Part shown: positions 49,264 to 53,925 of the stretch, in pieces | Layout: the number at the start of each line of letters is the position of its first letter | How positions within the stretch are numbered: the stretch's first letter is position 1 | Assembly (NCBI GenBank): GCA_002104945.1 | Contig: MCFH01000046.1 | Span: 248,001 to 312,000, forward strand | Length of the DNA: 64,000 nucleotides | Reading direction: 5' to 3' | Source: Piromyces finnis finn | Lineage: Eukaryota > Fungi > Neocallimastigomycota | Program-made: the position numbers and the translations under genes | The notes under the pieces: generated by a model | The model's input: only the letters and a program-made list of their open reading frames with translations | Database searches by the model: none | Told to the model about the DNA's origin: nothing

Positions 49264-50093
49264 AGTTTAATATTATTATATATAAAATTATTTTAAATTT
49301 TTTATGATTTATATAAATAATTTAACAATTTATCATCAATATATTTTTATTATTTTTTCAATCATATGTTATAAAACATGTTCAATTTAACATTAATAAT
49401 ACAATAATATTGTTTTATTTTGCTTTTCAACTTTTATATACCTATATTCATATTAACATATTTATAATTTATTAATAAAAATTTAATTTGCAATAGAAAT
49501 GATAAAAGTATATATTTAATAATGATAATGAGTGATATAATTAAAGAAATTAATGAATATTGAATTAATTTATTGTATAAATAAAATAAAATAATTTTAG
49601 CTATTTTAAAATTTAAAACTAAAAAAGTAAATAATAAAATTAAAATTTATAATTTCTTTTTTTTTTTTTTTTTTTACTATTTAATTGATTATTTAATTTT
49701 TTTTTATTTTATTTTATTTTATTTTATAAAAATGAGTTTATAGACTATACGAGAAAATATTACAAAATCTTAAGTATTATTATTATCATTATTAAACAAC
49801 TATAAATATTTTATAATGAGAAAAAAGAATTATTGTAATATATAAAAAAAAAAAAAAGTTACATTATAATAATCCGCAATTTTTTTATTATAACCTTTTT
49901 TTTTAAAAATTGAACCAAAAACTTCTTATTAAAAACATTAAAGAATTTTAAAACAGAAATTATTTATAATTTATAAATAAAATTAATTTTATATTATAAA
50001 TTTTTATAAATGGAACAAAAGTATTATTTGTATTTATTATATATAATATATATATAATAAATTTTTTAATAAAATTCTTAATAAAAGATAAAT

Positions 50094-51100
50094 CTAATTT
50101 TGAATGGAAGCATTCAAATGCAGTTTCAAGCGAGTTTTTCTTACTCCAATTTCTTTTCCTTTTATTAAACTTTTTCTTCTATCATAGTCTCGAAGTGATT
50201 TTTCAGTTATTATTGAACCTATTCTCTTATCATATTCTTCTTTAAATTTTTTATCATCTTGTAAAAGTAATAATTCAGATCTTGCTTTTTTGTTTAAATC
50301 CTCTGTATCTTCATTTCTAAACATTGGATCATTTGGATTATTTAATAAATTGATCCATAGATTTACATCTTCATCGCTCATATCATTATCCTCATTATCA
50401 TCATTGTCACTGTCATCATTATATAATTCATTATCAAAAATAACATTGTTCTAATCATTATCATCATTATTGTTTTTATTCTTAATTTTAAATTTAGGTA
50501 ATTCAATAACTGATAATAATAATTTACAATTACAATTATTATTAGTTATTATTTCATTACCCTTTTTGTCAATAAGAATATTCATATTTTCGTTGTATAA
50601 CTTTTCATATACATTTTGATAAAACTTTCCTTTATAAAAAGCTACACCATTTCTAGGAAAGGATCTATAGCCGATTCTATCGTCAAATATTTTATAATCT
50701 AATATATTATTCATAATGCTTTCTGGAATGTTTTCATATTTCTATCCTTTTAATACTGAATGAGATATTAATTTTGAAGCATATAATTCAGATTGATTTA
50801 ACATACTACCTACATTTGAAAAATTAATTTCTATATTTACGAGTCCTTCGTTTTTCTCTTCAATATCATCTGTCGATAATAATTTCATTTTGTTAACTTT
50901 TTAAATTTACTCACTAATACATCAACATTTGGAAAATTTTCTTTTAAACTTTCTGCCCTCAATTCTCTATCAATAAATTTAACATTTTAATGTTAAAATC
51001 AAAATCATCATAACACTCTAATATATATTTAAGAAATGAACCAAATAATCTTTTAAAAACAATATCGATAGTTGGGTTTATAGTAATATCTCTTTTATTA
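50094..51100 (-). pseudogene. Decayed Rpn / PD-(D/E)XK_2 ('PD-(D/E)XK nuclease family transposase') gene of bacterial type; intronless
   Basis: Reconstructed frame: INPTIDIVFKRLFGS...IKNVKFIDREL...NVDVLV...VNIEIN...SELYASKLIS...KG*KYENIP...NILDYKIF...SVIELPKF...WINLLNNP...KARSELLLL...EEYDKR...KGKEIG. It needs two 1-nt repairs in A runs (about 50985 and 50888) and has in-frame TAGs at 50742-50744 and 50451-50453. Confidence 0.8.
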
Positions 51101-52170
51101 CTATTATTTAGATTTCTTTTTTTCTTTCTTTTTTTTTTTATTTTAAATAATTAACCCACAAAATTAAAATTATAAAAAAAAAATTTTTAACATTAAATAT
51201 ATTAAATATATTTTGAGTATACCCAAAAACTTTAATTTATTTATTAATCTATTTTTTTAATATATATATTAATTAAACATATAACATTGATTTATTGTTT
51301 TTTAATTATAAAGAATGTAATCATTTTTAATTCTTATAATTTTAATTCATATTAATATATAATTATACTATTATTTTGTTTTTGGAAAAAATCTTATTAT
51401 ATAATAACTTGATTATTAATATCATAAGAGAATTTCTTCATTTTATTTATTAGCTCAATATATTAAATATTAAATAACGGTATAGAAAATAATTCATTTG
51501 AAATAATATATTATATATATTAAAATCAATAATTATAATTAAATCAATAATTTTTTTTTTTCATCATATGAAATCTATTTAATTATATTAATGTAATATT
51601 AATTAATACAATATTCTCTAATGATAATATATTTAAATCGAAAAAATAATTTAAAAAAAGATTGCTTATTAATTTATATTATATTATATATATTAAATTT
51701 ATAAATGATAAATACTTATTCGATAATATTTTTTATTATATATAAAGGAAACAGCTTCACCTTTTCAATTATTATTAATTCTTCTAAATAATTTTATATT
51801 TTTTTATAAATAATAATAAAAAACAATTTTATTTTAACATTAATTACATATAAATATAAGAATAAAAATCATTAAGATTTCAATATTAATTATAAATAAT
51901 TCAATTTAATATTCTAAATAAGAATAAGACATTTTGCCCAATAATACTAAATACTCTATAAAAGATTTTTTATAAAAAATTGAAATAAAAAGAATTTAAA
52001 TCATTTCAAAAAAAAAAAAAATTATTTTTTAAAAATTTATTGTAAATAAAAACTTCAAAATAATAATTTATATATACATTTTTTTTTAATAACAATAATT
52101 AAATTTAAAAGAAAAATAAAATTCTATCAATAACATTACCATTTCTACTTAATAATATATAATTCACAAA

Positions 52171-53925
52171 ATGTTTAAAAAGGTTTCAGTTATATTAAGT
52201 TTAATAAGCATTATTAATACTGTCCAATGTTATTCTTGTGATCCAAATACTTGTAAACTTCCAGATTGTCTTTGTCCTTCACACCTTCCTCCAGGTGGTA
52301 TAGATCCAAAAGATGCTCCACAATTTGTCTTAATATCATATGATGATGCAGTAAATGACAGCACTTTCGGTATCATTAAAAATATGTACAAAGGTCTTGC
52401 TCACAGTAATGGTTGTCCAGTTGTTGCTACTCATTTTCTTCAAAATCAATACACTAATTATCATTATGTTCAACAATTATATTCCCAAGGTGATGAAGTA
52501 AGTAATTTTAATATTAATTTATAAAAATGAAGATTTATCAAAAAATAATATTTTACATTATTGAAAAAACAGGAAAAGGAATTATTAAATTATTAATGAT
52601 TTTTTTTTTTTTTTTTAAATAAAAAAGATAGCTCTTCATACTTTTTATCACACTGAGTTAGCCTCACAAAAAGAAATTGAAAGTGGAAAAACCGTTATTA
52701 GTACTTTTGCTGGTATTCCCGAAACAGAAATTAAAGGTTTTCGTGCTCGTAAGTATATTTTAAGATAATATAAAAAATCATAAATATCAAACATAATTTC
52801 AAAGATAATAATAAAATATTTTTTTTATCTCTTTATTTAAAAATATTTATTGTAATTAATAACAAAAACTTTATTATTGATAAATATTAGCATTTTTAAA
52901 ATATAATAATGAATTACTTCAATCTATTCAAAACTTAAAGTTATTATATGATTCAAGTACTTCATCTGTACGTGAAGATACTACATGGCCATACACTCTT
53001 GATAATGGTGTTTCTGATGAATTCGATTGTCAAGCACTTAACATTTGTGGAAGTATTACTAATCATAATGGAATTTGGGAAATTCCACTTTACTCAACAT
53101 TTTATACCAGTATGTTTCTTTATTATAAAAAGAAATTACATATTAATTTTTTTATAAAAATAAAATAATCATTTACTAATTTTATATTATCATATGTAAG
53201 ATAATAATCCTCCAGTATCTATGGATCCACCATATGATGATGGTGCTTTATTAGATGTTTTAAAAACAAATTTTAATAATAGATATAATGGTAATCGTCA
53301 ACCAATGGCTATTGCAGTTCATGCAATTCACTGTAATGAACCAGAAGCTAAAGTTTCACTTTATCGTAATTTCATTAAATGGGCACTTAGTCAGAAAGAT
53401 GTTTATTTTGTCACCTATTCTCAATTAATTGAATACATGAAAAACCCTGTTAAAGCTTCTGAACTTTCTGGTCATCCAGCAATTAGTTGTTCAAAATTCA
53501 ATACATATACTGTTAATGGTAATGAAATATGTGATGGTATTGATAATAATAGTGATGGTAATATTGATGAAGGTCTTGTTGAAAATTGTGGTATTGGAAA
53601 TACTTATTTTTCAACCTGCTTCGGTTGTCCAACTTCTGAACCATCTGTTGATAATCCAAGCCCATCACGTAATGGTAATCGTATTTTAGTTCCATCTATG
53701 GGTTGTACTGAAGGAACTTGGGATCCAATTACTAGTAGCTGTGTTAGTACTACTGGATCTACTTATTTAGATACTACTACCTCGGAAAAGGTTGTCACTG
53801 AAGATAATATTAATAATGGTGGAGATAATAATAAAAGTGGATCATTATCATCATTTATCCCAACATCTATAATTAATATTTCCTTAGTTACTATTTTAAT
53901 TAGCTATATAATTAATTTCTTTTAA
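52171..53925 (+). CDS. Secreted, probably GPI-anchored polysaccharide/chitin deacetylase (CE4, NodB-like), 4 exons
   Basis: Signal peptide, then CDPNTCKLPDCLC, PQFVLISYDDAVN (DD motif), E|IALHTFYH (metal His pair), IKGFRAP|FL, WPYTLD, WEIPL and FNNRYNGNRQPMAIAVH. Ser/Thr-rich stalk and hydrophobic C-terminus. Confidence 0.9.

Follow-up and report, generated by a model that had tools for sequence, protein, structure and literature searches.

A decayed, truncated copy of an Rpn-family (PDDEXK_2) nuclease gene in Piromyces finnis and the family of intact and broken fungal copies to which it belongs

The stretch of DNA analysed here (the window) comprises 64,000 nucleotides of the anaerobic gut fungus Piromyces finnis (GenBank assembly GCA_002104945.1, contig MCFH01000046.1, forward-strand positions 248,001 to 312,000; this contig is denoted C174 below). 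A decayed, truncated copy of an Rpn-family / PDDEXK_2 nuclease gene was identified on its minus strand at window positions 50072-51113, and with a probability of roughly 0.9 this copy is a non-functional pseudogene of an intronless PF12784/TIGR01784 PD-(D/E)XK nuclease gene. This reading rests on what was observed with respect to the homology of the locus, its lesions, the family membership of the intact copies found elsewhere in the genome, the maintenance of their reading frames and the monophyly of the fungal proteins. Positions given without a contig name are those of the window.

The body of the pseudogene (50072-51113, minus strand) corresponds approximately to codons 3-413 of an intact paralogue of 475 codons, and its DNA is 78-83% identical to that of copies on five other contigs. 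When the intact paralogues were compared to the window by tblastn, residues 4 to approximately 375 were covered with E-values down to 5e-108, which is far beyond chance. Read in three minus-strand frames, the locus yields, in order, NPTIDIVFKRLFGS, NVKFIDREL...NVDVLV, LVNIEIN...ELYASKLIS, KYENIP...NILDYKIF...VIELPKF, an Asn/Asp-rich run and finally NLWINLLNNPNDP...KARSELLLLQDD...EEYDKR...KGKEIG. All peptide strings quoted in a preliminary description of the locus were thus recovered, although the 'near full-length' protein which that description proposed is too strong a claim, as homology stops at approximately position 50072 and the last ~63 codons, representing a helix-rich tail, are missing. 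The catalytic Asp codon (NVDVLV, 50921-50923) and the catalytic Glu codon (NIEIN, 50829-50831) are retained and align to D76 and E97, respectively, of an intact copy of 432 amino acids (aa), with N as the third motif residue. Translation and alignment furthermore place an intact IELPKF motif, the last conserved strand of the nuclease core, at 50490-50507, followed at 50376-50489 by an Asn/Asp-rich low-complexity insert which varies among the paralogues and has no counterpart in bacterial relatives. The four-residue repeats at the C-terminal end are represented by the short remnant KGKEIG, most of the array having been lost. In a six-frame search of the whole genome PF12784 matched 50679-50864 (24 bits, E 6.8e-4) with one TAG read through, and an X-stitched translation of the copy scored 31 bits against a profile constructed from eight bacterial members only; the copy is assigned to the family because of this latter score together with its homology to the paralogues.

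Lesions were mapped by DNA alignment and by column-by-column comparison with the 475-codon intact copy, which revealed six frame-breaking deletions. A 7-nucleotide (nt) deletion (ATGGACT) at 51113/51114 removed the start codon, while a 26-nt deletion between TTTGG direct repeats at 51045/51046 eliminated the conserved NEKNKDIL segment, interrupting the N-terminal P..D..FK.LFG motif and shifting the frame. The remaining four are 1-nt deletions at 51025/51026, 50986/50987, 50886/50887 and, near the 3' end, 50131/50132, each of which causes a frameshift. Additionally, two in-frame TAG codons are present, at 50742-50744 (CGG, CAG or CAA in the intact copies; TAG also in a pseudogene on contig C157) and at 50451-50453 (TAC or AAC in the intact copies). 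The preliminary description was accordingly right in listing two in-frame TAGs and no recognisable start codon, and right that 1-nt deletions occur, but it counted two of these where there are four and it lacked the 7-nt and 26-nt deletions. The interpretation of 'FGS' after FKRL as the ancestral sequence was rejected, as it is an artefact of the 26-nt deletion between repeats.

The intact paralogues score 74.8-78.2 bits on PF12784 (PDDEXK_2; curated cut-off 27.4) and 61.5-73.3 bits on TIGR01784 ('Rpn family recombination-promoting nuclease/putative transposase'; curated cut-off 52.1). The assignment to the Rpn/PDDEXK_2 family made from the letters of the window therefore holds, since the intact paralogues pass both curated hidden Markov model cut-offs and the window copy is homologous to them. 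Nothing in the genome rose above the cut-off of PF04754 (Transposase_31, the YhgA-like Rpn family), a single unrelated match reaching 15 bits (E 0.47), and on these profile scores the fungal family is placed in the PF12784 branch, not in YhgA-like Rpn proper. None of the PADLOC defence models matched the intact paralogues (best E 0.043). In an alignment of fungal and bacterial proteins, hardly any substitution is seen at D76 and E97 (numbered as in the 432-aa copy), and the third residue of the catalytic motif is H in the intact P. finnis copies, whereas Piromyces sp. E2 has Q and a fungal homologue from a metagenome has K. Columns P16, D19, F22, F26, G27, F208, E210, L211 and K213 are invariant or nearly so, and positions of this kind make up the P..D..F...FG motif, the catalytic Asp and Glu, two Tyr residues, the F.EL.K of IHFIELPKF and W..F, in addition to an Ala/Leu pair, one Tyr and one Gly within the EG-rich helix.

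Several features are specific to the fungal proteins. An insert of 25-28 residues lies within the nuclease core and is also present in the window copy, while the Asn/Asp-rich insert after IELPKF is found, among the gut-fungus homologues aligned, only in two Piromyces genomes. A C-terminal extension of approximately 40 residues shows weak TrmB-like (winged-helix) similarity and has a Lys-rich end. The longest intact copy (519 aa, C1:2010482-2012041) carries two in-frame tandem arrays, namely a 24-nt unit repeated 6.4 times within the Asp/Lys-rich insert (local positions 2198-2351) and a 12-nt unit repeated 12 times, encoding RKEG-type units, within the EG-rich helix (local positions 2589-2733). 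The copy numbers of such arrays vary between paralogues, and indels of 12, 60 and 108 nt were observed in the C-terminal helix region among the intact copies compared. An AlphaFold model of the 432-aa copy (mean predicted local distance difference test score 64.5) contains a long helix at residues 288-357. Foldseek comparison of this moderate-quality model with the PDB returned nothing at E <= 0.001, and among the weak matches at the top of the list restriction endonucleases (MspJI, EndoMS, BamHI, EcoO109I and AgeI) predominate. A sequence search of the PDB with the family profile returned only RpnA-S (7th0), the one Rpn fragment whose structure has been solved, at a non-significant E of 0.21. 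By analogy with E. coli RpnA, the intact proteins may be active metal-dependent DNA endonucleases.

A census of the P. finnis genome was obtained by a six-frame PF12784 search followed by comparison at the DNA level. Five complete intronless open reading frames (ORFs) of 400-519 aa were identified, all inside approximately 80 kb on contig C1. Two of these are arranged head to head with 555 bp between them (475 aa, C1:2008503-2009927, minus strand; 519 aa, C1:2010482-2012041, plus strand), and the others encode 432 aa (C1:2078078-2079376, plus strand), 432 aa (C1:2084968-2086266, plus strand) and 400 aa (C1:2086789-2087991, minus strand). One of the intact C1 proteins matches a hypothetical protein of Piromyces finnis at 100% identity, and an intact protein of 432 aa is catalogued as BCR36DRAFT_341477. 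At least six broken or fragmentary copies were found, the window copy included, and all copies on contigs other than C1 are dead. The broken copy on C1 itself (C1:1988877-1989955) lacks its N-terminal ~77 codons and contains a GC-richer insert of ~150 nt ending in poly(A), which looks like an insertion of the short interspersed nuclear element type. The remaining broken copies are the pseudogene at C157:478445-479756, the most decayed copy (C2:23147-24296), a copy split by ~2.5 kb (C178:965202-965300 and 967843-968529) and C24:874543-874941. The suggestion that the locus represents one degraded copy of a multiplied family, other members of which are still intact, is thus borne out, with at least five intact and at least six broken copies. 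The insertion that splits the C178 copy carries a 516-aa ORF whose start resembles that of a C1 retroelement ORF and which has no Pfam match. Separately, a retroelement ORF of the long interspersed nuclear element type (C1:2081281-2082345, minus strand; RVT_1 44 bits, Exo_endo_phos 23.5 bits) was observed between two of the intact Rpn-like genes.

In a maximum-likelihood DNA tree of the copies, rooted on the C2 copy, the window copy splits off below the C157 pseudogene and every intact copy (support 84/88) on a terminal branch of 0.11 changes per site, and it is therefore among the older duplicates. The TAG at 50742-50744 is common to the window copy and the C157 pseudogene, yet the two are not sisters in this tree; the codon may have been inherited or may be convergent, or the tree may fail to separate these branches. 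A dead ancestor common to both copies may be suspected from this TAG, but the tree does not pair them. The clearest sign of selection on the reading frame in the intact copies is provided by indels: all eight of those between intact copies are multiples of three, compared to 24 of 34 out of frame in three pseudogenes (the window, C157 and C2 copies). This test was used in place of the simple Nei-Gojobori count of non-synonymous and synonymous change (pN/pS), which is unreliable at 20-24% guanine-plus-cytosine (GC) content; split by region, that count gave 0.6-0.67 for the nuclease domain and 1.3-1.5 for the C-terminal part, both from small counts. Homologues with full-length ORFs and 28-54% identity were found in Piromyces sp. 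E2, in Orpinomyces and on sparsely gene-called, fungal-looking metagenome contigs, one of which also bears a CotH/chitin-binding gene, and it is therefore likely that the family has been retained over long times.

A remaining function of the decayed copy was considered with respect to a 95-codon ORF at 50094-50381 (minus strand). In E. coli, the variable C-terminal domain of Rpn is also made as a protein of its own by translation from an internal start, and in that form it inhibits the toxic full-length nuclease; its helix carries four-residue repeats whose number varies between strains (PMC10400941). The preliminary description had envisaged a comparable intragenic antitoxin in the fungus, pointing to an in-frame ATG at 50381 upstream of the helical domain. 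This ATG does exist, and the ORF that it opens spans the equivalent of the bacterial C-terminal domain that acts as blocker in E. coli (PMC10400941); a stop-free stretch of 118 codons may likewise be counted in favour of an RpnS-like antitoxin, or of a decoy, tempering the intact paralogues. Such a role is nevertheless very improbable. The ATG is private to the window pseudogene, all other copies aligned at this point having ATT or AAT. The frameshift at 50132/50131 places the last ~12 codons of the ORF outside the ancestral frame, and most of the repeat array has been lost. The pN/pS of the ORF against the intact copies (1.2-1.5) gives no sign of constraint, and with two stops in approximately 345 codons, chance would be expected to leave a stop-free run of this length.

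The intact genes give no support to a gene within a gene either. While they do possess a C-terminal helix with a variable number of four-residue repeats, as E. coli Rpn proteins do, the five intact proteins all lack Met downstream of IELPKF, i.e. there is no in-frame internal ATG before the C-terminal domain, and this lowers the claim that they are organised as E. coli rpn genes are. An internal transcript translated from a non-AUG start would still be conceivable, and the nuclease may be controlled in some other way in the fungus. A broader proposal is that gut fungi keep a diversified Rpn nuclease as a working system, either for defence against viruses or retroelements or as a selfish gene that promotes recombination. 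This is regarded as unlikely; it would bring together a fast-evolving C-terminal helix whose four-residue repeats vary in number, as they do in the anti-phage Rpn toxins of bacteria, the birth-and-death turnover of copies and the window pseudogene as a cast-off of this turnover.

It may alternatively be argued that the locus is a living gene whose frameshifts reflect homopolymer errors in the assembly, short introns or programmed frameshifting, and some of the 1-nt deletions do lie in or beside A runs. This argument is even harder to sustain than that for a functional ORF: the ATG was lost by a 7-nt deletion, the 26-nt deletion removed a conserved motif, both TAGs are substitutions rather than indels, and the missing 3' end amounts to some 63 codons. 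Moreover, DNA homology to the intronless paralogues continues unbroken across every frame break, meaning that the breaks are not introns and that the earlier assertion of an intronless copy was correct.

The dispersal of the family could also be viewed as the footprint of an autonomous mobile element in which the nuclease serves as transposase, a view encouraged by the word 'transposase' in the Pfam name, by the spread of copies over at least six contigs and by the resemblance of 49967-50060 to sequence upstream of three C1 copies. Against this, the alignments made revealed neither terminal repeats nor target-site duplications, homology breaks off at differing points from copy to copy, and the intact copies all reside in one region of ~80 kb. 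Zhong et al. found no evidence of rpn transposition and know of no autonomous PD-(D/E)XK transposase (PMC10400941). The chance that the locus marks such an element is accordingly slight, below that of a living gene.

The origin of the family was explored by means of a protein tree of 68 proteins sampled from word-search matches. The fungal proteins and one metagenome protein form a single clade with 100% support in the Shimodaira-Hasegawa-like approximate likelihood ratio test, and this clade adjoins a Clostridium perfringens-type group with 91% support. Bacterial relatives are 23-30% identical to the fungal proteins, the nearest being 27-28% identical. These sequence comparisons fit one ancient transfer, the source being a bacterium and perhaps a member of the clostridia, with both the direction of the transfer and its single occurrence being inferred; a rumen-bacterial donor is plausible. 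The proposal of a bacterial origin followed by long residence, already made for this locus, gains from the host-like GC content of the pseudogene (22.8%, compared to 20% for the window), from the fungus-specific inserts and from the position of the fungal clade within a bacterial family. That the copy stems from contaminating bacteria, from misassembly or from a recent transfer of its own, as the almost wholly bacterial distribution of the family might otherwise imply, is the least credible of the explanations considered in view of this GC content, the DNA identity to copies on five other contigs (which includes non-coding upstream sequence), the 25-28 residue insert and the Asn/Asp-rich insert held in common with the fungal copies, and the fungal genes on either side within a large contig.

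The history that best explains these observations is as follows. A bacterial gene family most likely entered an ancestor of the anaerobic gut fungi once, its nearest sampled relatives being clostridial, and then acquired the fungus-specific inserts and C-terminal extension. It now evolves by birth and death, with five open copies in ~80 kb of C1 and dead copies on other contigs. An old duplicate, formed at the DNA level with its promoter region included, came to lie in the interval that separates a replication factor C subunit gene from one encoding a secreted Cys-rich protein, and there it decayed, as is seen from the loss of its start codon, six frame-breaking deletions, two stops and the loss of its 3' end.

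Two surveys of gene transfer into Neocallimastigomycota, Murphy et al. 2019 (10.1101/487215) and Ciach et al. 2024 (PMC11291939), do not include this family in their main texts, and the part of the supplement of Ciach et al. that was consulted lists PDDEXK_3+AAA_19 xenologs and no PF12784 (PMC11291939). Full-text literature searches found no paper linking PDDEXK or Rpn to anaerobic fungi. A divergent homologue was additionally observed on the Joint Genome Institute metagenome contig Ga0302102_10004108 (117-1265), which is 28% identical and has the fungal C-terminal extension without the core insert. It is followed at 1408-1590 by a second PDDEXK_2 fragment, and the contig, which also has CotH/chitin-binding and ankyrin genes, is probably from another gut fungus.

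Certain observations weigh against the reading of the locus as a dead copy of a maintained, bacterially derived nuclease gene, or against parts of it. The window copy by itself stays below the PF12784 cut-off (24 versus 27.4 bits), and its five separate stop-free pieces match no relevant Pfam or NCBIfam model. Those 1-nt lesions that fall in A runs might in principle reflect long-read assembly errors, an explanation that cannot apply to the TAGs, the 7-nt and 26-nt deletions or the 3' truncation. With respect to the intact copies, whole-gene pN/pS between pairs is near 1, by the same unreliable count, and dead copies behave alike, so that constraint may be weak or mixed with diversifying change. 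Their expression is suggested, not proven, by four contig sets (20-45 Mb, guessed to be RNA) in which 70-92% of the words sampled from an intact gene recur. Finally, the closest proteins from bacteria share no more than 28% identity and the tree was drawn from word-search matches only, which leaves the clostridial group as a candidate donor.

As regards the surroundings of the locus, a non-coding 5' flank with an A/G-rich tract (51114-51372, minus strand) is homologous to the region upstream of the intact head-to-head pair on C1, and 50388-51372 as a whole is 78% identical to C1:2010225-2011243. This upstream homology, which extends to 51372, indicates that the duplication took place at the DNA level with the promoter region included. 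Beyond the truncated 3' end, 49967-50060 is 81.5% identical to sequence located 300-400 nt upstream of three C1 copies; it might derive from a former tandem arrangement or belong to a common repeat. Of the neighbours named in the preliminary description, the replication factor C subunit gene stands (upstream, intron-bearing; Rep_fac_C, 23.9 bits), while the label 'deacetylase' for the downstream gene could not be confirmed. That gene (52171-53925, plus strand) encodes a secreted protein with a signal peptide, Cys-rich motifs and a Ser/Thr-rich tail; its two large exons have no Pfam match, and the genome-wide list of PF01522 (Polysacc_deac_1) matches has none at the locus. The called neighbours of the Piromyces sp. 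E2 homologue have no replication factor C or deacetylase Pfam match, so nothing indicates a shared locus.

Compared to the C. perfringens-type bacterial Rpn proteins (PF12784/TIGR01784), the fungal proteins align from end to end and have in common the N-terminal P..D..FK.LFG.EKNKDIL, the catalytic D and E.Q-type motif, IHFIELPKF, W..F, a long C-terminal helix with EG-rich four-residue repeats and a final short helical pair. They differ in the fungal core insert, the Asn/Asp-rich insert of Piromyces, the C-terminal extension of ~40 residues and the third catalytic residue, which is H, Q or K in fungi and Q in bacteria; the host, moreover, is a eukaryote, and the copy in the window has decayed to a pseudogene. 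E. coli RpnA-E (YhgA-like, PF04754; Kingston 2017, PMC5350276; Zhong 2023, PMC10400941) belong to the same superfamily, bear the same NCBI 'Rpn family' label and similarly combine a nuclease domain with a variable C-terminal helix in which the number of four-residue repeats varies. In contrast to these, the fungal family has no PF04754 match above the cut-off and no internal in-frame ATG in its intact copies, and phages play no part in a eukaryote. With other bacterial acquisitions of the Neocallimastigomycota it shares host base composition, host-style low-complexity inserts and duplications, whereas most of the acquisitions reported are metabolic or carbohydrate-active enzymes and not defence-type nucleases.

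The window locus is thus an ordinary, datable fossil without function, whose value lies in pointing to a family that adds a eukaryotic member to a kind already known from bacteria. Intact copies of this family with maintained reading frames occur in at least Piromyces and Orpinomyces, alongside dead copies of several generations. Were the intact genes both expressed and active, they would represent a rare case of a prokaryotic defence-type toxin nuclease that has been domesticated, or persists selfishly, in a fungal nucleus, and one would then have to ask by what means a eukaryote restrains such a nuclease when no antitoxin is made from an internal start.

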